DNA of 63,400 nt, the filler included, from Ministeria vibrans ATCC 50519 (Eukaryota > Protista > Filasterea): the NCBI GenBank assembly GCA_943704425.1. It is 4 parts of 4 records of this genome, joined end to end, with 100 filler letters (N's around TTAATTAATTAA, not from the genome) between each part and the next. Parts side by side here need not be neighbours in the genome. Positions count along the whole stretch, not along the records: positions 15,013 to 43,348 come from CALSCP010001049.1; 3 more parts are not named here. The stretch is one strand, 5' to 3'. Numbering within the stretch: the first letter of the stretch is position 1; each line of letters begins with the position of its first letter. Below are positions 416 through 43,348 of the stretch, one piece after another. The notes under the pieces were generated by a model. The model was not told where the DNA came from and searched no databases. It saw only the letters and a program-made list of their open reading frames with translations. The translations under genes and the position numbers were made by a program.

Positions 416-1825
416 ATGTATTTACAATGTTGTGCTGCTTTTTCGTCTGTCTCAGCCGCTTCAAACTCGCACTGATGGCTGCAAAATAAGAACAAAAGCG
501 TAAAAAAAAACCGATTGAACTCTTCTGGCGTACATTGTGAAATCTCAGGATAGAGCGTCAGGCCTCGAGTGACTGTATAACAACCTACACACAAAGATAT
601 TATGAGATAAATATCTTTCTTTGTCTCTCTCCCTCTCAGCAAATATCAATGATTCTTATTCGAGTACCGTTTGAAGAGGAGACGGGCAAGGAGAAGAGAA
701 CACCAGCGGAAACGCCATAGGAGCCATCGGAGGGCACAGCCATGTAGTGGAAAGAGCGTTCAGGTCCCAGCCAGTAGTGCATATGGCGCACGGCAGCACA
801 CGCACACGCCATAACACCACTCCGCTTACGTTTACTTCTACTGTGTAAGTGTTGTGCACACCAATCCGGGCCAATGAGTGTGCGCGCGTCGGACGCACTT
901 GCAATGTGCGTGTCTGAGCCCACTACGCACGCATCACGTCCGTCACCCCACACCCCCACATGTGACACAGTCGACACGTCCACCCCACACACCCGTGCAA
1001 TCTCACTGCGCGCCCACTGGCTTCGCACTGCGCCAATGCTACATGTTACGTTGGTGCGTGCAATCCCTGGCGCACTCAGTGACGTCACCAACGCAAGCGT
1101 GTTGCTGTCCATGCGTGAATCATCTTGTTCATCCGTTGCAACCACACACACCTTGACGTTCTTCTTGGCGCTCTGGCTCAGCGCACGTCCGTAACATCGA
1201 TACTCCTCAATCGCAGACTGAAAAGCCACAATCAATCAATCTCTCTCTCCCTCTTACTTTTTGTGTTACTCGTACCTCTTTGGAATACTCGGCTGTGGGT
1301 TCGTCGAGTAAAAAAGCAACATCGGCATCCCTACAAAAAAGACGTACTATTCAAAAAGAACGTACTAATACCCAATCATAACAATTCCTCTGCTCGTACG
1401 TGAAAGCAAACTCTGCTCTGTCGGTGACCGTTACGGAGAGCAAATTGGGAAAAGCGCAGTCTTCCAATTCCATGCGTACACCATCAAGAGCCTCTTGACG
1501 CGACGGCGCCGCCAAAAGACGCAGATGGACATTGCAAGTGGCGATCAGATCTCCACGAGCAATCAGCCTAAACTATTGTCAAAAATGCGTCTTGTCGCTT
1601 CTCTCTCACGTCGTACGGCAGCATTGAGTACGCAATAGGACTGGTGGCTCCAGTGACTGCCACCACCACGGCGTCACCGGCGCTAAACGCCACTGGGTAT
1701 TGCTACAAAGGGGATCAATCCACACGCAACAAATATCAGAGACAACTCACCTTCGCCGTCAGGAACTTATTCACCAACGGTGGAGCCGTCACATGCTGGT
1801 GTATCCTCTCCACGCGATCAGCCAT
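416..1825 (-). CDS. Cytosolic-type (MDH1 clade) malate dehydrogenase-like protein, multi-exon, catalytically degenerate, PTS2-like N-terminus
   Basis: Spliced exons read VVVAVTGATSPIAYSMLP, LDGVRMELEDCAFP, DADVAFL, YGRALSQSAKKNVKVCVV, VGVWGDG and MAVPSDGSYGVSAGVLFSLPV, collinear with MDH1. 3' end approximate. Confidence 0.8.
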
Positions 1826-1998
1826 GATGCACAAAAAAACGTCAGAAAATGTGTTGAATTTCAAAATTTCAGTGTAAAGAAGAATCCTTTTCGACTTTGA
1901 CTGATCGCCAATAATTGCCAATAGACAAATCACTAACTTTGAAGAATTGCCCAACGCGTCTCTCACCCGCTGCGCACCGCCCCGTGGCCTTGCCTTCC

Positions 1999-4900
1999 AT
2001 GCCCTTCTGTGCGCTCTATCGGGCCAAGTCGATCGCTGAGCTCAATGCGCAGATTCTTCCCGAGTCCGCTCGCCAATTCCTTCGCGAGCGCGCACGCAAG
2101 CCCGCCGCGCAGGTGTCCGTGGCGGCGTCTGCTGAGAAACTCCATGATAGCGGTAAGTGGCTTGAGAGCGGCGCGACGACAAAATGTGTCGAAGTTGTGA
2201 TGTTTTTCAGTCGAACTTACGAGAGAGAGAGAGAGAGAGAGAGAAAAAAAAAAAGAGACGGGAATGTTTTGGGTTGAGAAAGAGTCTCTGATGGATGTGC
2301 TATTTCTGGGGGTTTGTAGGCGCGGCGCTGCGAGCCGAAGACCACGAGATGGCGTACATCTTCTACCGGCGGGCGGTGGAGACGTTTGACGAGCTGAGGC
2401 AGGCTGGGTCGCCTCTGCCCACCAGTGGAGCGTACTTTCGGGTGTTCCAGCAGGCCATTGACAAGTCATGCAAACTCAAGGAAATCCTCAAGACGCGCTA
2501 TGCCGAGGCGGCCGCGCACGAAGAAGGAGAAGCTGCTGCTGCTGCTGCTGCTGCTGTCAAGGCTGGCGCAGAAGAGGAAGAAGCGGCTGCAGCAGCCGAA
2601 ACCGCACCGGACACGGAACACACTCCAACTCCCCTGTCTGCTGACGAGCTTCTCATCGACGCTCTTGACTCCGTCTTTCCCTCCACCACTACTATTACTA
2701 CACCGTCAACGCCCGCGCACTCAAACACGCCCACCTCGATCGACGCACACGCTCTTTTTGAAGCACTCAACCGCACTAGTCACAACAAGGTGCTCATCCT
2801 CGACGTGCGCTCCTCGCCGCTGTACTGTCGCGGGCGCGTCAAGTGCCGTCGCTCCCTTAATATTCCTCCAGCAATGCTCCAGGCGGGCGCAACCACAGCC
2901 GATTGCGAAGCGGCCCTTGTCACGCAAAAGGCCATGGACCTGTTCCACTCACGCGACCAAATGGACCTCATTGTGATTGTGGACGAACCCAGCAGCACCA
3001 GCGACGCGCTGCTGCTCACCCAGCCCTCGTCGCCCGTCACCGTCCTTCACGATGCTCTCTTCAAGTGGTGTGCCTCGTGTCCCCTCGCACAGCCCCCACG
3101 CGTGCTCACCGGTGGCTATCACGAGTGGTCCCGTCTTTACCCGTCCTTTTGTGTCGCGCGCACCACAAAGGAACTGCCCGACGAGACCGAACTGGCCGCG
3201 TCGGCAGCACTCGATACGGCGAGCTATCCCGCAAGCAACACATTGCTCAACGAGGACGACTCCACCCCAGCTCATACGCAACCCGATGAGAGAAAACCGA
3301 CTGAGTCTGCGCCAGCGTCGTCGTCTGCGCTCAAGAGTGGTTTGCGACGCAAAAAGAGTGTCTCGTGGGGTCCCGATCGGGATTTAGTGGAGGAAGTGGA
3401 GCAAAAGAGACGCAAAGAAGAAGAAGAGAGAGCTGAGGCAGAACGACGTCTGTTAATGGAACAGGAGCAACAGCAACACTATGAAGAGGAGGAGATACGC
3501 AAAGAGGTTGATGTACCAGAGTCGCATGGCACAGAGGACAGGGCCAGTTCTATTGATATAGTCGCCGCAGCCTCAGCAGAGCCGCCTGCTCTCCCTTCCG
3601 CTCCCAAACCCCTCATGTCGGCTCACTCGATGCCTTCATCCTCTGCTCAAACTGTGCCCACCTCCCCCGTTCCTTCCATCAATCGCAATGCAAAGCCAAT
3701 CCCATCATCATCAACTGCGCCCGTCTCCTCCCCTCCCCCCACACGTCCGCCTCCCTCACAGCCCCCCACCACCACACTCACTCCCGCATCACCACCCCCA
3801 GTCAATCGCACCGTCAAACCTGCACTTCAACCCTCGCGCCCGCCACCAGCAACGCAACCCTCGCGACCCGCTCACCCTCCTCCACCTCCGCAGCAACCCA
3901 AACCAACTACCATCACAGACCCTACAATAGCAACGACGGCAACCGTTGCCCCCTCTATGCTCGCCCTGGCGCCTAGCTCTATGGGCGACACTCTGCGTGG
4001 CATCACAGGTTTGCGCAATCTGGGCAACAGCTGTTTTATGAGTGCCATTGTACAGTGTCTCTCTGCGACCCTTCCCTTTACCCTTTACTTTGTCAAGGGT
4101 CACTCTGTGCGTGATCTCTCAGAGCACAACCGCGACCGGAAACGCAGCGGTCGTCTTGCAATGGCCTTTGGCGATCTGCTACGTCTCCTGTGGAGCGGCC
4201 AATACGACGTGGTCACGCCCATTGAGCTGAAAAATGTCCTTGCGCGCTACTGGCCTCAATTTGCCGGGTATCAACAGCAAGACTCGCAGGAGTTTATGGG
4301 GTTCCTGCTCGACTCACTCAATGACGAACTCAACATTGCAACTGCCCCACCTCCGACTGTACCCAGTGACAACGACGATGACGTGCACGCGCCCCGTCTG
4401 CCACCAGAAAAGGAAGCCGAGCTCGCCTGGGCGGCACATCGTGCCCGCGAAGAATCCATCATTGTCGACTGCTTTCAAGGACAGTATTGCTCAACGCTGC
4501 AGTGTCTCACGTGCAACCACAAGAGCACCACTTTTTCTCCATACACCTTCCTTACTCTCCCTTTGCCCCCTCACCGCCAGTCCACGACTGTCTCCCTTGA
4601 TGACTGCATCCGTGCCTACACCCAACGCGAGACCATTGACGACTGGCGCTGTCCCCGCTGCAAAGTGCCCCGCTCCGCCACAAAACTTCTTCAAATCTGG
4701 TCTACTCCTCCCGTCCTTCTCATTTCTCTTAAGCGCTTCTTTCACACTGCCACTCACATGGACAAAATCGAAACACTCGTTAATTTTCCCATATCGTACA
4801 CTAAGCATAATCAAAAATTAAGATTGTGAGTTTTCATTCTGACTTTGCATCTCTTCTCTTCTTTGGTGTATGTCTCACAGTGATTTCCATGTGGAAAATC

Positions 4901-15012: not shown

Positions 15013-15125
<113 letters not shown>

Positions 15126-16472: not shown

Positions 16473-19400
16473 TTAATCCATGTCGTCGAGTAAATCATCG
16501 CCTCCAGCAGCGTCTTCGGCTGTCGATGCTAACTGGCCATGGGCCATCTCGCCGGTGGCCACAAAGGCAAGCGCAGTGTCTCGACTGACTGTCGAGTCTT
16601 CCGATTCATCCGTGCTAATCAGTGTAATCCCGTCGCCCACAACCATCTTCCAAAAGTCCTCTCGGTCCTTGAACTCATAGTCGGCCTTGAGCGTCTCCAG
16701 GAAGATGTTGAAAAGCGCACTCATTTCCACCGAAATGCACCCCTTGCGCATCGCACGCACACATTCCAGCGCCTTGTTGTACGCCTGTGCCTGTCCATAC
16801 GAATCCTCCACGATGCCCCGGAGCACTCGCCCGATCCCTACACACAAAGCCGCATCAAAAATAATAAGAGCAAATTCCCCTCCTCGATTGCGACTCGTCT
16901 TCAACTTTGCATCATTCAATACCTTCAATGGCTTTGTGGTGCAAATCCCCGTCCGAGTTCATCATGGCATTGAAATCCTGAATGGGAGTGTTGGCACCGA
17001 CGTCGGTGACCATGGCACCATCGCCACCGCCCATGCTTGCAAGCGCCAGACCGGCACTGCCCGACACACTCGCTCCCATCTTGCTTGCTTCGTCGTTGGC
17101 CAACATGGTTGTGTTCCACGCCGCGCCGCTCGACACGGCACCTGCACTTCCCGTTGCGCCCGCTGCAGCACGCTTCACGCCTTGCTCATTTACTTCGAGT
17201 GGAAATTCATCGCGCACACGCTTCAGCGACTCGCGAGCGCGTTCTTGTATCTCAGGGTTGCGTTCCAGCATCGCTTTGAGCGGTTCAGCCAGGGGTGCCA
17301 GTGGCTGTGCATGACCCCGCACAAAAAAAAATGTTTAAAAATGAACAGAGAGAGAGAGAGAGAGAGAGAGAAAGGAGGGAGATAGAAACAAAGTGATAGA
17401 GAGAGAGAGGAAGGAGGGAGATAGAAACAAAGTGATAAAGAGAGAGAGAGAGAGGAGGGAGATAGAAACAAAGTGATAAAGAGAGAGAGAGAGAGAGAAA
17501 AAAAAGTCATACCTGGTCAGGTTGAAAGACGCGGTGCTCTACGACCTTAAAAAGATGCTGCAGGCCTGGATTGGGAATGTGCTTGGGCTGCACGCCTTCG
17601 CCCCTCTCCCCTCGTCCCAGGTCCACGTCATCTAACTTCATTGATTCCACCAACGACTTGACAGCGTTGCGCTAAACAACAACGTTGTAATAATGAAAAA
17701 CAATTATTATTATTATTATAAAAAGATAAGACAAGTCGCAAATGAGAAAGGTCCTTTGGGTTCCATTTGCGTACTTGAGAGGTAGAAATGTTGCTGCGAT
17801 CATGCGTGAAATCGGGAAAGGAGTAGAAGCGAATGTCGTCGGCAAAGGGAACCTTCACCATCAGCAGCGAGTGGTAGTGTTCTTTGATGTGCGGAATGAG
17901 TATTACGAGTCGAGCGTCGAGTCCTGAGCAACCAAACGTGATTGTGATGTTGTGATTTAAACTCTTTTTTGTTTTGTTCTCATTGTTTTCAGTCATACCT
18001 TGGCGATAGACAAACCGAGCCAGAGCAACCTTCTTATCACGCTTGAGGGCACGCACAAAGGCATCAAAGGCACGCACAGCGTTGGGGTCGTTGCGCGGCA
18101 CCACAGCAGCCACACTGCTCATAAAGTGGAAGCGGGGAATGTCGTTGCGCGGCGTGAACTGCAACACGGAGAGACCGCTCGAGGTGGGGAAACTGTCGGC
18201 GTTCTTCTCGAGGGGCACATAAACCTTGCCAAAGCGATAGCCTTCGATCACCTCCTGCTCCTGCATGTCCTCGTCGTCGTCTCCGTCCGCCTGCCCCTCG
18301 CTCTCCTTGCTCATGGTCGTCTCGCGAATGGCCCGTACTTGGTCGTGCTGATTACCTCTCCCTGCATTGGCGTCGTCCTCGGAGAGCACAGAGTACTACA
18401 CCAGAACAAGAACAAGGTCGAATACGAACGGTTGAAGAAAAACAATAAAGTGTTAAGTGGTACCTTGAAGAAGGAGGGGTATTTTTGGGAGTTGGTGCGC
18501 ATGTAGGCCTCGACGGGGATTTTGACCTTGCCAGCAATGTCGAGGGCGCCGCGGTAATAAACTGTCTGACGTGTGCGCTTCTCGACAAACACCATGGCCT
18601 CAAGCGCATCGTCAATGGCAAACACACTGCCGTCCGCGACGGTGTCGGCCATTTCGTGCAGCGACTTCATCGCCTCCGTTTGCGGTGTTTCGGATGAAAC
18701 AGCTTCCGCGCTCTGCACCCCTGACAGCGACAGGCAGTCAATGACTTGCAAGATAAACCCGTGAGCCTTAAGTCCTTCGCAGATCGATTCAAACGAGCCT
18801 CGGTCATTAAGAATAGGCGAGCGACCGTCTACAACAAAAGCAAAAAGTGAGTGATACAACAACATGTAGAGGCAAGGGTGTATGTGTGTCTTAGTTGTGT
18901 GTCTTTTTGTGTCTTTGTTGTGTCTTTGTTGTGTCTTTGTTGTGTGTCTTTTTGTGTAGCTTTTTGTGTCTCTTTTTGTGTCTTTGTTGTGTCTTTGCTG
19001 TGTGTCTTTGTGTGTGTTTTTGTGGTGTTTGTGCTGTTTTTGGTGTGTGTGTCTTTGTGGTGTGTGTCGCTGTTGCGTATATGGAATGATGGACCTGTGA
19101 TCACAACAATGCGCTTGTCTTGCTTCTTCTTGGCGACCGATCGCACAAGCGAGTCCATTGCGACCACAACCGCATCAATGACTACGGAGACATGCCACGA
19201 AGAGAATAAAGAGAAGAATGTTATAAAAGGACGCGACAATGCGGACGCGGGCGTGCGGTTGGTGCTGCGTACTGTCGCCACTGTCGTTGAGGTTGAGTTT
19301 CAGCTCGTTTCGCAGGAACAACATCACCTCAAAGTCGGGCGGCGTGAGGTCGCGCGCCAACGAGATGTGTGCATACCGCTCGCTGCCCTCCTCGTACACG

Positions 19401-23681: not shown

Positions 23682-24585
23682 ATGAGCTTGGAAGTGCCTG
23701 TAAAGCGGCTTGTGAAGCTGCTGAGCCGGCGGCGAGGCACCGCAACAGGTTTTGAATGATTTTGGGGCAGTGAGCGTTGTTTTTTTTTTTATCGCTGACA
23801 TCTCATCCCTCTTCGCCGTTTAGCCTGTGCTGCTGCCGCTGCCGGCGCTCTCTTTCTTTGGTCGAAGACGCGCAAGGTAACGGGGCTGACGATGAATTTC
23901 GAGAGAGAGACGGCCGTTGATTGGGCGACGAGGGGGAAACGATCGCACGGGCTTTTCCACCCGTTGACTTGCGGATACGCTGACGTCCTCGCGCCTCTGC
24001 GGCGCTTCTTGTGTGGTGTAGACGTCGTCGAGGACCGCCATGGCCAGGGGGGGCGATCCATCGAAGGGCAAGCCGGCGCACAGGAAGGTCGCTGTGAATC
24101 GGGAGTTTCTCTTGCGCATTCGTCGTCTGCTGAAGATTGTCTTGCCCGGCTGGCGCAGCAAGGAGGCGCTGCTGCTGTTTGCACACACTGTCACGCTCGC
24201 CCTGCGCTCCTTTCTGTCCCTCTATGTGGCCGGCTTGGACGGCGAAATCACCAGGAGCATTGTGAACCGTGAGCCGTGGGCGTTTGCCGGCAAGCTGAGT
24301 ATCTGGCTCATGATTGCGCTGCCGGCCACCTACATCAACAGCATGATCCGCTTCCTCGAGAGCAAGCTTGCCCTTGCCTTTCGCACGCGTCTCGTCAAGC
24401 ACGCCTATGAAATGTACTTTGTTGATGAGTGCTACTACCGCATTGGCAATCTGGACAACCGCCTCGCCAACGCCGATCAGGTAAATAAATATTAATAATA
24501 ATAATAATATATTATTATTATTATTATTTTATTATTATTATTATTATTGTTGTTATTATTATTATTATTGCTATTATTATTATTA

Positions 24586-24654
<69 letters not shown>

Positions 24655-27447
24655 CATCATCATTATTATTATGTGAGTTGTGGATTCACCATCGAATGTA
24701 ATTTCTTTTTTTTGGGGGGGGGTTATTTGTGGCAGTGCATGACGGAGGATATTTCGCGGTTCAGCAACCATCTGGCGCACATCTACTCGCAGCTGAGCAA
24801 ACCCACGCTCGACGTGGTCCTGATGACGGTGCAGCTGTTCCGTATGGGCGTGAGCTCATCGGGCAGTGCGACGCCAGCCATCAGCGGAGCCATGGCGGCA
24901 CTTGTCATTGGGTCTACGGCACAGATCCTGCGAGCGGCCAGCCCGCCGTTTGGACGGTTGGTCGCTGAGCAGGCTGAAATGGACGGTCACCTGCGCTACG
25001 TGCACTCCCGCATCATCACCAACAGCGAAGAGATTGCCTTCTACGGCGGACAGGATGTCGAGCGCTCTGTCCTCGAAAAGGTGTGTTCACTGTTTTATTG
25101 GTGTTCATTGTTGTGTGGTCACACGTTGTCTATTGCTGTAACCGTTTATTTGGCTTGTTCAGTCTGTCTCGTTGGGTTCGTTGTTGCTCAATGGTGGCAC
25201 TAACGTCGTCGTGGCTCGTTTTTTGGGTGTGATTCTTAGGCGTACGACCGACTGGTGGGCAAAATGAACGACATCTTCAAACGACGCATTCTGTATGTGA
25301 TGCTCGAGCAGTTCCTGATGAAGTACATGTGGAGTGCAACTGGCATGTGCATGATTGCCCTTCCCGCCCTCATGTCCTCCGATGAGTCCCTTCGCCAGGT
25401 TCCCATTTTCATTGTTTCTCCTCTTGTCCCTACTCTATTTCTGTCGTTCTCTTTGTTAGTTTTTCTCTTGTTCAGTTGTCCATTGTTTCATTCTTTTCGT
25501 TGTTCCCTCGTTGTTTGTGTCGTTCTCCTTTTGTCCACATACTCTGTGTCTCGTTTTTTTTCTTTTTCCACTACCTGTCTATGTCTGTCGCTATGCTGTT
25601 TCCACTACCTATTTCTGTCTGTCTCTTTGCTGCTTCCACTGGTTTGTTTTTTTCTGTTTCCACTACCTACCTATGTGTGTTTCTATGCTGTTTCCTCTAC
25701 CTGTCTCTGTTTGTCTCTTTGTTGTTTCCACTACCTATTTTTGTGTGTTTCTCTTTGCTGTTCCCTTTCTTGTTTACTGCCTATCTATCTGTGTTTCTAT
25801 GCTGTTTCCTCTACCTGTCTTTTGTCTGTCTTTTTGCTGTTTTCACTACCTATCTCTGTCTGTCTCTTTGCTGTTTGTTTTTTTTTTCTGTCCTCTGACT
25901 TGTTTACTACTCCTCTCAGTCTGTCTGTTTTTCTTTGTTGTTTCCTCGCTCGTTCGCTCACTCTTATTATTTGATGTTTTGTTCTTTTGTTCACTTACTT
26001 ACTCTCTCGCTCTCCTGTCTCTTTCACAGGCGGCGGGTGGTGGCTCCGATGGTAGTACCGACATGAGTGGCGTCCGCACGCAGATGTTTGTAACGGCGCG
26101 GTCGCTGCTGCACTCCGCTGCGGACGCCATTGAACGCATCATGTCATCGTACAAGGAGATCACAGAGCTGGCCGGGTACACCGCGCGCGTCTCCAACATG
26201 TTTGACGTCTTTGGTGATGTTCGCAAGGGCAATTTTGTGCGGACAGCGCTCGAGGGCTCTGACTCGGCTAACAGCGGTGTGCTCTCACGCCAAGGCAAGG
26301 TGGTGCTGTCGGGCGATGACAAGGTCATTCGTCTTGAGAAAGTGCCTGTCGTCACTCCTGCAGGTAAACCTAATTTTCGTGCCCTAATTTATATATTATA
26401 ATGGCAATCCTCATTCCTCCTTCCCTCTTGCAGGTGACGTTCTGGTGAAGAGTCTCTCGTTTGAGCTGCGTCCAGGAATGCATTTGCTTATCACGGGCCC
26501 GAATGGCTGCGGCAAGAGCTCCTTGTTCCGCATCTTTAGTGCTCTCTGGCCCATCTTTGGCGGTACTCTCCACCGCCCCCATCGCTCGGACCTCTTCTAC
26601 ATCCCTCAAAAACCTTACCTCTCACTCGGAACACTCCGTGACCAGGTACGTGCGTGCTTCTTTTTTTTTTTTTTTTTTTTGTNNNNNNNNNNCGGGACGG
26701 GTCTTCAATTTGTCATGTCGACTGCGATGCCATACGATCTCTATGGCACATCCATGTCTCTTACCTTGCCAACTTACGTGTAGGTCATCTATCCAGACTC
26801 GGTCGTGGACATGCGGCGCCGTGGTTACACTGACGCCGAACTAGAGTCTATTCTGGACATTGTCAGTCTTCGTGCCGTTGTGAGCCGAGAGGGTGGGTGG
26901 GATGCGCTCAATGACTGGGCCGACGTGCTCTCGGGCGGCGAGAAGCAACGCCTTGGTGTCGCTCGCCTCTTTTATCATCGTCCTACGTATGACAGACACA
27001 TCTGAAACGTCACGCATTTTATCTCTTTGTTGTTTCTTGGTTAGGTATGCGCTTTTGGACGAGTGCACAAGCGCCGTGTCGATTGACGTTGAAGGGCAGA
27101 TGTATCAGCGCGCCAAAGACATGGGCATCACACTGATGACCATTACCCATCGCCCATCGCTGTGGAAGTTCCATACGCATTTGCTGCAGTTTGATGGTGA
27201 GGGTGGAGTTGCCTTCTCGACCCTCGACGCCACAGCGCGTCTCTCGCTCAAGGAGGAGAAGACCAAGCTCGAGGCTCAGCTTGCCGGAATGCCGTCGATG
27301 CAACAGCGTCTCGACGAGCTGTGCCGTGTTCTCGGGGAAGATTCGGTAATTGATCTCTCTTCTCTTGTTCGATTGGCTTCTTACATTTGGTTCCTTTGGT
27401 AGATTTTTGTTGAGCATGGCAGCGATGAGGCGGAAGAAGAAGAGTAA
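23682..27447 (+). CDS. Peroxisomal ABC half-transporter, ABCD1/2-like
   Basis: [20 protein letters not shown], Walker [36 protein letters not shown]. Confidence 0.93.
25540..25930. repeat. Degenerate intronic minisatellite in the ABCD gene (TGTTTCCACTACCTATxTxTGT-type units)
   Basis: About ten imperfect copies of gctgtttcc(a/t)ctacct inside the roughly 630-nt intron. Confidence 0.75.
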
Positions 27448-30279: not shown

Positions 30280-33200
30280 TTACACTCTCACCACTCCGTT
30301 TCCCTCTTTGAAAAGCTGAATGTCGCCTTCGTTGGTCGCCTGTCCGCTCCAAGCTGTCCAAATGCGCCCTACCACCGTCGCCTGATATGTATTTGCCCGG
30401 TCTAATAACTGCAACTGGCGGCGCAGTTCGACGGCAGTGAGCACATCCGACTCCTTAAATGCTGCTCGCTCTCTGCCCAGCGCCCGGATCAGCATTGACG
30501 TAAACTGGGTTGTCGATTCATCGCGTGTCAAATACGACGGTGTACCGCGCAGTGAGCTCGCAATCATTTGTCGTGCGTAGTTTCTCACAGGTGCAGCTCT
30601 GTCCTCGGGCACAATCAGAGTCTCCTGGACACCTCCATCTTGCATCACTATGTCTCCCTCTCCTCCAGGCACCAGTGCTCCGCTGTTGCAAAAGTCGCCC
30701 AGGACAAGGACGTTACAGCCAGTCCATCCTATCTCATCAAGAAGAATTGACGCCAGCCAGCGCAAAGTGAGAGGCAAGACACGTCCTGTCGGCGAGAGGC
30801 GGGCATCACTCAAGAGCAGTCCACCATCACCATCCATCGGTCCGTGGCCAATCAAATGCACGATCAGCAGCGAGTCCCTCCCAGCAGTCCTTCCTGCCTC
30901 CTGCGCCAGCACGCGGCCCTCCTTGATGATCTGCGCCCGTGTCACGCGATCGCCCTCCTCTCGGTCCACCACACACCTCACCCCAAATCCCCGCTCCACC
31001 CACAGTTCTTGCAGCTGGCGCACACTCTCTCGGACCCCAACAAGGTCGTCGTAGTTCTGTAAGATTTTATTCTTCGTTGAGCTGTACCGGCTGACACCAA
31101 TGATTAGCGCCGAGGCGTGCGAGTAGATGCCTTGCGCTGCAAAGAGGGGTAAGAATGACTCGAACATGCATGCATGTTTGTTACGTACGCTGTTGCTTGA
31201 CCCACCAGGACTCGAGATTCACATTGTACTGCACCTTTTGACCTGAGTGGCGTGCCAATTCGCTCCTCACTGTTGCAGCGTGGCGGCAGTACTCAAGCTG
31301 CTTAGCAACCAGATCGGGATCAAAGAGAGGGCATTGAGTGCCGTTTGATGCAGGGAATGGATGTACAGGTACGACGACTGCTCGTCCGCGCCAGCCCCAT
31401 TTCAAAGTGCGTGTCTGGTGGCACACACTCTCGCATAGCTTCGTCCAAGTCGCCTCCACCTCCTTAGCTGGCGCACCAGCGGTCAGTTCGACTCTCACAA
31501 ACGACTCATTGCTGTTGAGTCGCAATCTCAGAGGCACACACCCGTCCATTGTCAGCGCATTGGTACACCGTTGCGTCGCCTCGATCACACTCCCAGCAAT
31601 GCTTGCGCGCCACAGCGACACCATCACTAGATGGAAGGTCGCCAGAGACACAGGCAGTATCGTCCAATCATTCTTGTCGGTTTCGATCATCTGATAGAGA
31701 AACAGCTCGGCGGGCGCGGGCGCGGCGAGCGGAACAAAAGGAGCGTCGTCGGGGAGCAGCATGGGCAGCAACAGCAAGTCACCGTGACGCATCGCCAGGC
31801 TCAGGTGCTCCAGGCACTCGATGAACGTGTCAACATTACTCACGTTACCGCCACAGAGTAGAGGGTCCGCGCTGTCTTTGGCCGCCGTCCACACGAGCCA
31901 CTCAGCCACTTCGCGTGGGAATCCTTCTGAGGACCGGATGAACGATTCGTCAAGAGTTTTCAGCACTCTCTCTGCACGAGACCGATCAAGGAGACGACCC
32001 GCCTCAATGACCTTCCTGAGCATCCCCTGTGCTCTTTCGCTTGAAGCCCGTCCCCATCGCGCCATCACCACAGAGCAGAGCAGTTCCAGCGCCGCAATCA
32101 AACGCGGAATGTCAAACACGACTGTGTCCGTCTCGCGCACATTTTGAGACGTCGCGTCCTCTCGACACACCACGATGTCCGCGGCTGACTCCAGATAGGG
32201 CACTAGTCCAGTGCGGACCATTGCATCGTCAGAAATCAACGCAGAGAGAGTGATGGGTGGGTCGTTGTTGAGGACAAGCAAGCCGAGATCTGCCACACGT
32301 GACATAAGTGTGATATTCTTCTCTCGAGCCCATCGCCCAATCAGATCCTGCGTGCACACGTACTCCATCGGAAGAGTACGCAGGCGCACGGCATCATGCA
32401 GTGCCTTTGAGAGCGCCTCCAGTCCAATCCTTTTCTCGCTGCCGACCGCAAAAAATGAAAGTGGAGGATCGTGTGGACAAATCAGATGATCGCCCAAGAG
32501 CTCAGCGACAAGACTGAAGATCGCGTCTGAAACTGACTGGAGAAGAGTGAGTGGAGCTGTGTCGTCGGGAAAGGTGTCAAGGTGAGTGCCGACGATGATG
32601 ACTTTGAAGTAGGAATGAATGGTGGTGGGCACTTGGTGCATGACCATGTGAGCCCACTTGGAAATGTGTTCATACTGGCGCTGGGCAGTCGTTGTGACGG
32701 ACATGGCGGAGAGGTCAAAAACGATGAGGTAGAGGGACTCGGAGCCCATAAACAGAGATGGGAGGGAGTCAAACTTGGGCTCGCCTAAGAGGGCGAGAAA
32801 GTAAACGTGGCGAAAAAGAACAAGGGTGAAGAAGCGAGTTCCAAAAAAGGAAAGAGCGAAAAAGAGAAGGGGATTGTGGAATTGTGTACCGGCAAAGTCT
32901 AAGGTCTCAAGGTCAATGTGGCCCTTGCGCAAGTCCGACTGGAGCAGAGCGTGGACGGCTTGCATAGTAGCGCTGATGATGGGGCGTGGTGCCGCATTGC
33001 TGGAGAAGACTAGCTTCAGTTTTTCCATAAAAGAGGGGGCTGGGACTCGTATGTGCGGAGAGGCGGGTGTTGTAGGCCGAGTTGATGGTGGTACACGAAA
33101 CAAGGATGCTGATCTGGTAGGTGTCGCTGCTGGTGAAGCGTCACGCACACTTAATGTTGTCGGAAGAGAATCAACGTCCTCTACTTCACCAGCAATTACG

Positions 33201-35111
33201 GCATCGCTCTCCTCCCGTACTGAGATGAGACTTGCCAAGTGAAACTCATCCTCAGGGACTGCTCTGAAAAGACCCGTACGGCCGTCAAAAATCATTCGCA
33301 GTCGCTTCATGCGGGTCGCCACTGAGCGGTCCCTTGGGTCGGGCAGCGGGTTCCCCTGCAAAGCTGCAACCAGAGCCGTTTTGCCGGCGAAGACAGCACC
33401 CAAACAGAGCAATTTGATTGAGCGGGAGTGCACAGAGCCACGCTGGAGGGCAGCGTTGAAAGCTTGATCGTATCGACCTATGATGGAAGATTTGGTCAAA
33501 ACGCTTGGCGACTGATACACACGATAAGACCTTTCACAACAAATAACTCCTTTAAGAATGCTGTTGTGTCTTGCTTCCACTGCGCTCGGTCTGCAATGAC
33601 AAAGTAACAACTAAAATAATGGTTCTAACAAAAACGACTCACCAACTAGAAAGACGGTTACTTACTCATTCTCACTATTCTCAAACCTTACCAACTAAGA
33701 CAATGCAAAGAAGAACACACCAGTCCAAAACACATGTCCAAATCAGTCACTCACTCATTCTCACTATTCTCAAATCTTACTCCCTAAGACAATGCAAAGA
33801 AGAACACACCAGTCCAAAACACATGTCCAAATCAGTCACTCACTCATTCTCACTATTCTCAAATCTTACTCCCTAAGACAATGCAAAGAAGAACACACCA
33901 GTCCAAAACACATGTCCAAATCAGTCACTCACTCATTCTCACTATTCTCAAATCTTACCGTCTAAAACAATGCAAAGAAGAACGCACCAGTCCAAAACAC
34001 ATGTCCAAATCAGTCACTCACTCATTCTCACTATTCTCAAATCTTACTCCCTAAGACAATGCAAAGAAGAACACACCAGTCCAAAACACATGTCCAAATC
34101 AGTCACTCACTCATTCTCACTATTCTCAAATCTTACCAACTAAGACAATGCAAAGAAGAACGCACCAGTCCAAAACACATGTCCAAATCAGTCACTCACT
34201 CATTCTCACTATTCTCAAATCTTACAGTCTAAGACAATGCAAAGAAGAACACACCAGTCCAAAACACATGTCCAAATCAGTCACTCACTCATTCTCACTA
34301 TTCTCAAATCTTACTCCCTAAGACAATGCAAAGAAGAACACACCAGTCCAAAACACATGTCCAAATCAGTCACTCACTCATTCTCACTATTCTCAAATCT
34401 TACCCCCTAAGACCATGACCAACAGCAGAGAATCAAGACAAAAAATTGTGTCAGGTATACACTCAAACAGCGGATATTTCAGAATAGAAACCGTACAGTC
34501 TACAGAGACGTCAGCGTTAGCGAGCCTGTCAAACGAACATATGCTCTCTTACAAACTGCAAAACACAAAGTGCCACCAATCGAGGAGCAAGTTAGAACCG
34601 ATCAGTATCCATTGTCAAGCAAGTCACAAACCTTCTAAAAGAGACAATAATAATAATAATAATAATAATTATTATTATAGTTATTGTTTTAGTTTGCGTC
34701 GACCAAATCCGACTTTTTGGTCTCACTTGCACAGAGATTGTCCAGCCATGGCGTGAACCCTTCGTTGCCTTTGTACGTAATCTCCTGCAGGTGTCCTCGC
34801 ATGTCTACAATGGCTGTTGGGAGCGTCTTGAGCTGGCACTTCCCGACGTCAAGCAACTTCGTCCAGAAACAACAGTCGACCGTGAGAAATCGTCTCCGTC
34901 CTCCCTCGTCCCATACCTTGAGCTTCTTGAACCGGCTAATCCAGTCGGGAATCACCTCAAGCGGGTTGCCTGTCAGCAGCAGTTCCTGTAGAGTGTCAGC
35001 AAGAACAAGAATTTCTTCTGGTAGAGAAGTGAGCCCCATCCCCCTCAGGTTCAAGGAATGGGACGCGCGAGCCTCGTCAATGCGTTCTTGTAGCGAGAAC
35101 AATAGGGACAT
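30280..35111 (-). CDS. Roco protein: LRR, micro-exon-encoded loop, Roc GTPase, COR, caspase-like (peptidase C14) domain
   Basis: LRR LNLRGMGLTSLPEEI...LLLTGNPLEVIPDWI; Roc G1 GAVFAGKT, G3 DFAG, G4 VGTHLD; caspase ALIIGVSRY, HLIGHG, LGDFCNSG. A 52-nt GT-AG intron (31137-31188) joins the COR and caspase ORFs in frame. Confidence 0.85.
33692..34406 (-). repeat. 89-bp tandem array: 8 near-identical 86-nt introns (gtaagatttgag...cattgtcttag) separating 9 variable 3-nt micro-exons
   Basis: Exact 89-bp period. Triplets at 34404, 34315, 34226, 34137, 34048, 33959, 33870, 33781 and 33692 read GGG, GGA, ACT, TTG, GGA, ACG, GGA, GGA, TTG on the minus strand, each as tag|NNN|gtaag. Confidence 0.92.
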
Positions 35112-35567
35112 GCTTTTGCCACAAGGAGAGAGATAATAATATTGGTGACAGACTGTTGATTCACTGTTCATTTAGTTCAAGTCTCTGTTTATCTCTGCTT
35201 TTTTTTCTTATCCCTTCACCTTTGACTCGCCACCCCCACGCCCCACGCCAGTCGTCACACGCGCCCTGTAAGTATATTAAGGAGGGCAAAGCTCTTTCTT
35301 TGCCATCCGTGCCTGACCCAATGACCTCACTCCAGCCAATCAAACTATGGAATGGGATAGACCAATCAGTGCCCAATTGGCGATGCGACTGGCCACGGAA
35401 CTCACTGGGCGCAAGTAGAAGTAAGTTTTAAGTGAAGGATGCTAAAGAAGGCGACTCCCGAAGCGGTGAAAGGTGTTCAACAAAGAAAGAGGAACTGTAC
35501 ACCGTCAAAGTTACTTCACTTTTTAGTCTTTAATTTTATTCCGTCTTCAACTCCTGAAAGCCAAGAA

Positions 35568-43239: not shown

Positions 43240-43348
<109 letters not shown>

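Follow-up and report, generated by a model that had tools for sequence, protein, structure and literature searches.

The window analysed was a 63,400-nucleotide stretch of DNA from Ministeria vibrans ATCC 50519 (assembly GCA_943704425.1). The element under study is an array of micro-exons of 3 nucleotides (nt) each, on the minus strand of the window, in a gene of the leucine-rich repeat (LRR)-Roco-caspase type. The 1.1-kb gap between the last LRR exon of this gene and its next ordinary exon is a series of short spliceosomal introns with real 3-nt exons between them, and these triplets are present in the mature RNA in the order of the genome. We hold with good confidence that these are real micro-exons amplified as intron-plus-codon units, probably mostly constitutive, which encode a fast-evolving Trp/Gly-rich spacer between the LRRs and the Roc-COR region.

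The array runs from 34726 to 33591 (minus strand). Its 1136 bases were parsed with no remainder into 14 GT..AG introns and 13 triplets. The introns are, in order, 92, 76, 53, 90, 86 (eight times), 46 and 52 nt long and the triplets read AAG TTT ACT GGG GGA ACT TTG GGA ACG GGA GGA TTG TTG. The upstream LRR exon ends at 34727 (..TGT GCA A/GTGAGA, the slash marking the splice site) and the downstream exon starts at 33590 (..TTGCAG/AC CGA GCG). The same coordinates and triplets had been given in the original prediction, a note made from the sequence before this analysis, and all were correct when the region was parsed again. Tandem Repeats Finder identified an 89-nt unit with 95% matches over most of the array (Table 1). 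The pattern YAGNNNGTRAG occurred 12 times in the whole window, 11 of them inside the array, compared to 2.7 expected, and none of 100 shuffles reached 12. In the eight full units two of the 86 intron columns were variable compared to all three exon columns, a split with a chance of approximately 9e-5 (hypergeometric arithmetic by hand). As read from the sequence, the donors of the unit introns match GTAAG[AT] perfectly, and the introns have a CTGAT branch-like motif and a pyrimidine-rich tail, with no AG from the branch-like motif to the acceptor. The micro-exons had been claimed not to be a by-product of the repeat, and this was borne out as the four leading ones lie among unique introns and keep their position in six paralogs. 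An (ATT)n-type run is located in the first array intron (window 34637-34700), where reads are apparently cut because of the repeat.

The RNA evidence consisted of assembled contigs from sequencing runs X1, X5 and X7 (three organism labels, three studies) and X19. The share of the gene's words present was approximately 70% in X1, X5 and X7 and 93% in X19. Two ordinary introns of the gene, of 60 and 53 nt (Table 1), were precisely skipped in contigs of X1, X5 and X7 and neither was skipped in X19. As only the first three runs skip ordinary introns they were classed as spliced RNA, and X19 as DNA-like. The LRR-exon contigs of X1, X5 and X7 aligned to exactly 34727 and continued in letters matching nothing in the window. 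The chains were read by making reverse complements of these loose ends by hand. Past 34727 the chain was AAG TTT ACT GGG GGG ACT TTG GGG ACT GGA in X1 (74 letters in total), AAG TTT ACT GGG GGA GGA TTG ACT GGA GCT in X5 (54 letters) and AAG TTT ACT GGG GGG ACT in X7. On the 3' side it ended ..ACG GGA ACG ACT GGA GCT TTG TTG/ACCGAG in X1 and ..GGA GGG GGA TTG ACG GGA TTC GGA TTG TTG/ACCGAG in X5. The X1 chain contained at least 24 triplets. These chains establish that the predicted 3-nt micro-exons exist and that splicing brings them into RNA.

Partly spliced contigs were also present, with two, three or at least 11 joined triplets beside retained unit introns. X1 and X7 also included a form in which the last two introns were removed and the intron upstream of TTG (33692) was retained. 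One X7 contig joined TTG-GGA with both outer introns retained, which is the window order (34137 then 34048), and in another a chain of 11 or more triplets ran into a unit intron that had not been removed. X5 contigs joined GGA-GGG-GGA and TTG-ACG-GGA. None of the triplet-chain joints was seen in X19, and the genome assembly, searched with up to 2 mismatches allowed, contained no contiguous exon-chain junction. Splicing therefore joins the triplets, which are not contiguous elsewhere. A processed (contiguous) gene copy was ruled out as the source of the chains by the same lack of a junction in the genome. The LRR exons of the window showed zero differences to the contigs of X1 and X7 and 3 differences in 339 letters to those of X5. 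The contigs were assigned to the window's own gene because of this near-identity, the nearest genomic paralog being 83% alike.

The genome assembly comprises 29.7 Mb in 2860 contigs. Most of the assembled paralogs, in a family of approximately 12, have the array architecture in the same place, and at least 151 copies of the unit were present. The adjacent-unit pattern gave 158 matches compared to 0 in the reversed control. Parsed arrays contained 15 (contig C1600), 17 (C1260), 34 (C73), 22 (C2647), 43 (C915) and 45 (C43) micro-exons, and several of these arrays are interrupted by assembly gaps, so that the counts are lower bounds. Across the family the arrays range from 13 to at least 45 micro-exons, with unit introns of 77-86 nt. 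The LRR exon end (..CTCTGTGCA/A) and the downstream exon (CAG/ACC.. ..TGGAAG) are shared by the arrays of which both ends are assembled. The first four micro-exons could be aligned in six paralogs, and so could their unique introns, their splice sites and the CTAAC/CTGAC branch motifs. These head micro-exons spell K-V-[YF]-W-G. The single-codon exons are therefore older than the radiation of the family. A generic genome scan for 3-nt exons that occur in pairs with other short introns yielded 70 matches compared to 67 in the control, and the convincing matches were all in the LRR-Roco-caspase family. Apparent chains at 25.5 kb of the window, at 5286-5952 of L035 and in L039 were rejected as coding or low-complexity repeats without splice-site context. 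An AG-rich satellite of approximately 39-41 nt (..GAAACAAAGTGATAGAGAG..), present at 17347-17511 of the window and on many contigs, also yields spurious AG-NNN-GT chains.

All 166 junctions of consecutive unit cores in genes measured exactly 3 nt. Two of these have variant signals, a GC donor (TTG/GCAAG) and an acceptor with AAG in place of YAG, in one unit each, in the arrays on C312 (L032) and C1260 (L033). The lone spacer of another length, CATGG (5 nt), is at approximately 6790 in L039 (C2854), in a truncated array fragment that borders on unrelated sequence and is probably non-functional. Phase-1 translation of the window array gave K-VYWGNFGNGRIV-D with no stop. The 189 triplets of the family contained 0 stops in the true phase-1 frame compared to 13 in the offset-1 frame. 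When the order of the triplets was shuffled inside each array, only 1.2% of the shuffles were free of stops. Gly, Val, Ala and Trp (9.9%) are abundant in the encoded peptides, as are Arg, Pro, Asp, Tyr and Phe.

Pairwise diversity (pi) was 0.54-0.75 in the triplets compared to 0.008-0.042 in the introns of the same units, in all seven arrays, giving a triplet to intron ratio of 15-89. The middle base of the triplet is the codon wobble position, and its variability was no higher than that of the other two bases. One intron haplotype could be found beside many different triplets, and some blocks of haplotype plus triplet recurred. Identical triplets were in excess at lags 1, 5 and 6, indicating both single-unit and multi-unit duplications. 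Units were 96-99% alike within arrays and 75-92% alike between arrays, while the neighbouring LRR exon was 76-83% alike between paralogs. The arrays are therefore old, with units homogenised or re-expanded within each array. The gain and loss of units, which the original prediction had named as one source of diversity, fits arrays that differ in length and content across paralogs and RNA data sets.

Array fragments that break off inside a unit and abut unrelated sequence were located at approximately 4990-5060 of L031 (C1600), approximately 5330 of L035 (C2647), the upstream flank of L032 (C312), 6680 of L039 (C2854), 1-110 of L041 (C2414) and in L040 (C1251). The junction of the C1600 fragment was also present in X1 and X19 contigs and is thus not a fault of this assembly. 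The arrays may be rearrangement hot spots.

A mechanism can be proposed on this basis. The ancestral gene would already have had a few single-codon exons, those of the conserved head K-V-[YF]-W-G. One intron-plus-codon unit of 80-89 bp would then have become a minisatellite and grown by single- and multi-unit duplication. With introns of approximately 50-90 nt each GT would pair with the nearest downstream AG (intron definition), and each unit would be removed alone, leaving one triplet. Adjacent introns only 3 nt apart are presumably too close for simultaneous commitment, and removal would be stepwise with no fixed order. The partly spliced intermediates were of several kinds and showed no fixed direction. 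Inclusion of the micro-exons would be mostly constitutive. The product would be a spacer of variable length in an NLR-like LRR-Roco-caspase protein, and such a spacer may, speculatively, tune the seating of the LRRs on Roc-COR. Units would evolve in concert within an array, and the diversity of the triplets would need diversity-favouring selection or a raised mutation rate.

Several points weigh against this reading. The main unexplained one is that triplets are 15-89 times as diverse as introns despite the turnover of whole units. Candidate causes are diversity-favouring selection, a locally raised mutation rate or short conversion tracts confined to the introns. The chains differ among X1, X5, X7 and the window (GGA or GGG, ACG or ACT, and order), which may reflect fast change between strains, a collapsed repeat in the window assembly or alternative splicing. 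Both the number 13 and the inner order of the triplets are uncertain, because the array was assembled from near-identical repeats and RNA contigs with identical flanks carry longer or reordered chains; assembly collapse may be responsible. Triplets 9-11 of the window array are supported by the genomic parse and not by contigs. The RNA nature of X1, X5 and X7 was deduced from the precise GT-AG skips, the run labels 'RNA?' being a guess. Mostly constitutive inclusion was likewise deduced from stop avoidance, and the contigs hold neither isoform ratios nor full-length chains. The Trp/Gly/aromatic-rich spacer is probably disordered, judging from its composition.

A possible but doubtful alternative is that the arrays are a neutral by-product, a minisatellite that expands and contracts in an insertion-tolerant spacer with no adaptive role, its triplet diversity reflecting a lack of constraint. 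The large length differences among paralogs would be expected, and truncated fragments of arrays, along with gaps in the assembly, suggest that the repeat is unstable. The low-complexity peptides also have, stop avoidance aside, approximately the composition predicted from the triplet composition. However, the turnover of whole units should homogenise the triplets as well as the introns, and the excess of triplet diversity was found in seven of seven arrays. The avoidance of stops by the genomic triplet order and the retention of head and tail micro-exons across paralogs are further arguments against neutrality.

Combinatorial alternative splicing, in which micro-exons are skipped stochastically or under regulation and one gene gives many linker variants, was considered rather unlikely. 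Each unit is symmetric (3 nt) and the frame survives any skip. The contigs end 18-74 nt into the chain, and the chains differ despite identical flanks, as mixtures of isoforms would. The original prediction stated that no subset of triplets creates a stop. This held in the window array (0/66 pairs) but not in the family, where a single skip would introduce a stop at two sites of the C2647 array and at one site of the C1260 array. Non-adjacent triplet pairs, as joined by skipping, contained a stop in 53 of 2822 cases (1.9%), which is the chance rate, compared to 0 of 182 adjacent pairs. Selection thus seems to keep the full-inclusion reading and not every subset. None of the contigs showed a skip when compared with a known genomic order, and the joints listed for the runs did not include a direct one from 34727 to 33590, although contigs cannot reveal the absence of rare isoforms.

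It is unlikely that the arrays are a dedicated codon-cassette device for diversification. In such a device the introns would serve as recombination homology tracts and as interchangeable splice partners, the triplets would be shuffled, gained, lost or skipped singly, and mutation or selection would be focused on the exon bases, giving the NLR-like receptor family a spacer that differs per strain and possibly per cell.

A mobile, introner-like element of 77-86 nt inserted repeatedly into an older contiguous exon, with the triplets as exon remnants, is very improbable. Identical intron haplotypes beside many different triplets are what insertion into pre-existing sequence would give. However, all of the at least 151 copies are in the arrays of one family or in fragments of them, and genome searches found no intact solitary copy in another gene. 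There is no target-site duplication, adjacent triplets being mostly unlike. The 3-nt period at 166/166 junctions is predicted by unit duplication and not by independent insertions, and the higher-order repeats copy triplets along with introns. That each intron hosts a small RNA, as in SNORD115/116 arrays, with the triplets as mere spacers, can be dismissed as extremely improbable: the introns are strongly conserved within arrays and laid out in tandem, but they had no Rfam match at E up to 1 and folding energies no better than shuffles (z -0.14 to +1.2), and the triplets are in frame and stop-free between coding exons of one protein.

Micro-exons amplified as intron-plus-codon units remain the preferred reading. 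An LRR-Roco-caspase host, as first proposed, was supported by Pfam matches to LRR_1 and Peptidase_C14 and by a Roco-like predicted fold. Searched exon by exon, LRR_1 scored 21.1 bits (cut-off 20.6), and approximately 4 repeats of the LxxLxLxxN type are readable after removal of the 60-nt intron. The translation of the large exon has a P-loop, GAVFAGKT, shortly past the array. The Pfam Roc match was weak (19 bits, cut-off 27). An AlphaFold model of the large exon, aligned with seven metagenome relatives, was usable for residues 247-760 (predicted local distance difference test, pLDDT, 70-90), with low confidence in the N-terminal 246 residues. All its top Foldseek matches were to Roco proteins, namely 6hlu (LRR-Roc-COR of C. 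tepidum, E 7e-7), LRRK1 8e04, LRRK2 8fo9 and the COR domain 3dpt. These matches fit a COR domain directly after Roc. The low TM-scores of approximately 0.2 indicate likeness of domains and not of the whole arrangement. PF00656 was matched at 24.3 bits (cut-off 21.4, E 2.9e-5), and the motifs HLIGHG and DFCNSG are present in the open reading frame 30280-31167. These motifs fit a caspase-type His-Cys dyad of Peptidase C14, with putative activity. The array encodes the spacer from the last LRR to the Roc P-loop, which is of low-complexity composition. Its earlier description as a ligand-binding loop was not supported, as the segment is a low-complexity inter-domain spacer and nothing puts it on a ligand surface.

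Table 1. Features of the LRR-Roco-caspase gene and its micro-exon array (window positions)
Feature	Position	Strand	Evidence
First coding exon, start of LRR region	34917..35171	-	Open reading frame, LRR_1/LRR_14 matches; start codon 35171 or 35111; RNA-like contigs span 34917-35125
Ordinary 60-nt GT..AG intron	34857..34916	-	Skipped in X1, X5, X7, not X19
Last LRR exon, ends in phase 1 (..TGT GCA A/)	34727..34856	-	Contigs align exactly to 34727, then triplet chain; 12 genomic copies
Micro-exon 1, AAG	34632..34634	-	Parse; first triplet past 34727 in X1, X5, X7; kept in paralogs
Micro-exon 2, TTT	34553..34555	-	Parse; RNA-like contigs; kept in paralogs
Micro-exon 3, ACT	34497..34499	-	Parse; RNA-like contigs; kept in paralogs
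Micro-exon 4, GGG	34404..34406	-	Parse; RNA-like contigs; kept in paralogs
Micro-exon 5, GGA	34315..34317	-	Parse; GGA in X5, GGG in X1 and X7
Micro-exon 6, ACT	34226..34228	-	Parse; sixth triplet in X1 and X7
Micro-exon 7, TTG	34137..34139	-	Parse; seventh triplet in X1; TTG-GGA junction in X7 contig with both outer introns retained
Micro-exon 8, GGA	34048..34050	-	Parse; TTG-GGA junction in X7
Micro-exon 9, ACG	33959..33961	-	Parse only; ACG present in X1 and X5 chains in other order
Micro-exon 10, GGA	33870..33872	-	Parse only
Micro-exon 11, GGA	33781..33783	-	Parse only
Micro-exon 12, TTG	33692..33694	-	Parse; X1 and X7 contigs join 33692-33694, TT, G (33591) and next exon; X5 also ends ..TTG TTG
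Micro-exon 13, TTG	33643..33645	-	X1 and X7 contigs as for micro-exon 12
Tandem array, 89-nt unit (86-nt intron + 3-nt exon), 8.5 copies	33660..34417	-	Tandem Repeats Finder
60-nt exon, starts in phase 1	33531..33590	-	RNA contigs
Ordinary 53-nt GT..AG intron	33478..33530	-	Skipped in X1, X5, X7, not X19 (cut moved +3)
Large exon, P-loop GTPase (Roc) and COR	31189..33477	-	Weak Pfam Roc match; predicted fold resembles Roc-COR of Roco, LRRK1, LRRK2
Putative 52-nt intron (GTACGT..GCAG) joining two frames	31137..31188	-	Sequence reading; outside contig coverage
Last exon, caspase-like Peptidase_C14, stop codon included	30280..31136	-	Pfam PF00656; HLIGHG and DFCNSG motifs

No psbA was found in the assembly, and an atlas search with the neighbouring NFACT gene gave no placement closer than Eukaryota. 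Homologs of the Roc-COR exon in public protein data were limited to seven metagenome proteins. Relatives of this exon (53-63% identity) came from scaffolds of one metagenome, ENA ERZ23497376 (L042, L049, L050). They have WD40 in place of the LRRs, ordinary introns of 70-100 nt and no micro-exon arrays. Contig C73 (L034, 7252 bp) contains two family members head to tail: one array closes there with the exons behind it, and the LRR exon and the first part of the array of a second gene come next. Some paralogs, at least, thus lie in tandem. A paralog on contig C2596 (L047, approximately 1380-2500, plus strand) has the LRR exon, micro-exons AAG TCT TTT GGC and one repeat-type intron, and beyond these it has another kind of downstream region, in which a tyrosine-kinase-like motif (VAVKTLKEGATEKE..) is present. 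The structure resembles a domain swap at the array. A receptor-tyrosine-kinase-like motif in one paralog may hint at a holozoan. In the C915 and C43 paralogs (L036, L037) the post-array exon contains several EQQRL repeats in a row, which the window gene lacks. Long microsatellites elsewhere in the window include (TAT)55 at 24510-24672, next to the exons of a gene like those of ABC transporters, and one at either end of the piece, (GT)54 at 15013-15121 and (AG)53 at 43243-43348.

Tens of consecutive single-codon exons, accurately spliced in approximately 12 genes, would be the most extreme micro-exon architecture known to us. They would mean that intron definition alone copes with exons far below any exon-definition limit. 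The arrays would offer a natural substrate for the study of splicing order and fidelity in a setting where adjacent spliceosomes have to exclude one another. As 3-nt exons will escape standard gene finders and RNA aligners, such genes are probably mis-annotated. A minisatellite that gains or loses exactly one codon per unit is here coupled to an unexplained 15-89-fold excess of diversity at the exon bases in candidate immune or cell-death receptors, which makes the origin of repeat-driven receptor diversity directly testable.

The closest likenesses are to known systems of small or duplicated exons. Schistosome micro-exon genes (MEGs) have short symmetric exons of 3-81 bp that can be dropped in frame; they are linked to protein variation and encode disordered products, and their exons vary in length and lie between long unrelated introns of up to 5 kb (PMC10526429). 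The arrays share with them very short symmetric coding exons. Further marks of MEGs are a secreted product and documented alternative splicing. Every exon here has 3 nt, and the near-identical introns of 77-86 nt stand in tandem. The array forms a 13-45-codon spacer of an intracellular multidomain protein of approximately 1200 residues, and not most of the coding sequence, and the organism is a small-genome protist-like eukaryote and not a trematode. In the LRR-ROCO genes of brown algae exons are shuffled within the repeat domain, with one whole LRR motif per exon (PMC3341825, PMC11378527). An LRR and Roc-COR host, duplicated modular exons, conserved intron flanks and the standing of fast-evolving candidate immune receptors are common to both, whereas the module here is a single-codon exon in a spacer past the LRRs. 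We know of no homology between the introns of those genes and the array introns.

Isolated 3-nt micro-exons of animals and plants indicate that the spliceosome can include an exon of this size (PMC8632122, PMC8831610, PMC7821500). Those exons are single or in small clusters between long introns, compared to runs of 13-45 here. Micro-exons of animals often need tissue-specific factors. In recursive splicing and at dual-specific AGGT sites an acceptor stands almost directly before a donor and removal is stepwise, and the tandem repeats of the polyubiquitin gene UBC are delimited in this way (PMC6224609, PMC10809524). Recursive sites leave a zero-length exon or a cryptic exon that is later removed, whereas 3 nt are kept at each step here (166/166), are present in RNA contigs and are translated. 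SNORD115/116 loci combine tandem near-identical introns, short exons and concerted evolution (PMC3413130). Their introns host small nucleolar RNAs and their exons are non-coding, in contrast to the coding exons here, in whose introns no RNA family or structure was found. Introners are near-identical introns dispersed in many unrelated genes and bearing signatures of insertion, whereas the present copies are confined to the arrays and array fragments of one family. No description of runs of 13-45 consecutive 3-nt exons was found in the literature searched (full text). A fixed 3-nt exon, tens of units and short, near-identical introns in tandem occur together in none of the compared systems. The arrays are best filed as micro-exons amplified by tandem exon-intron duplication.

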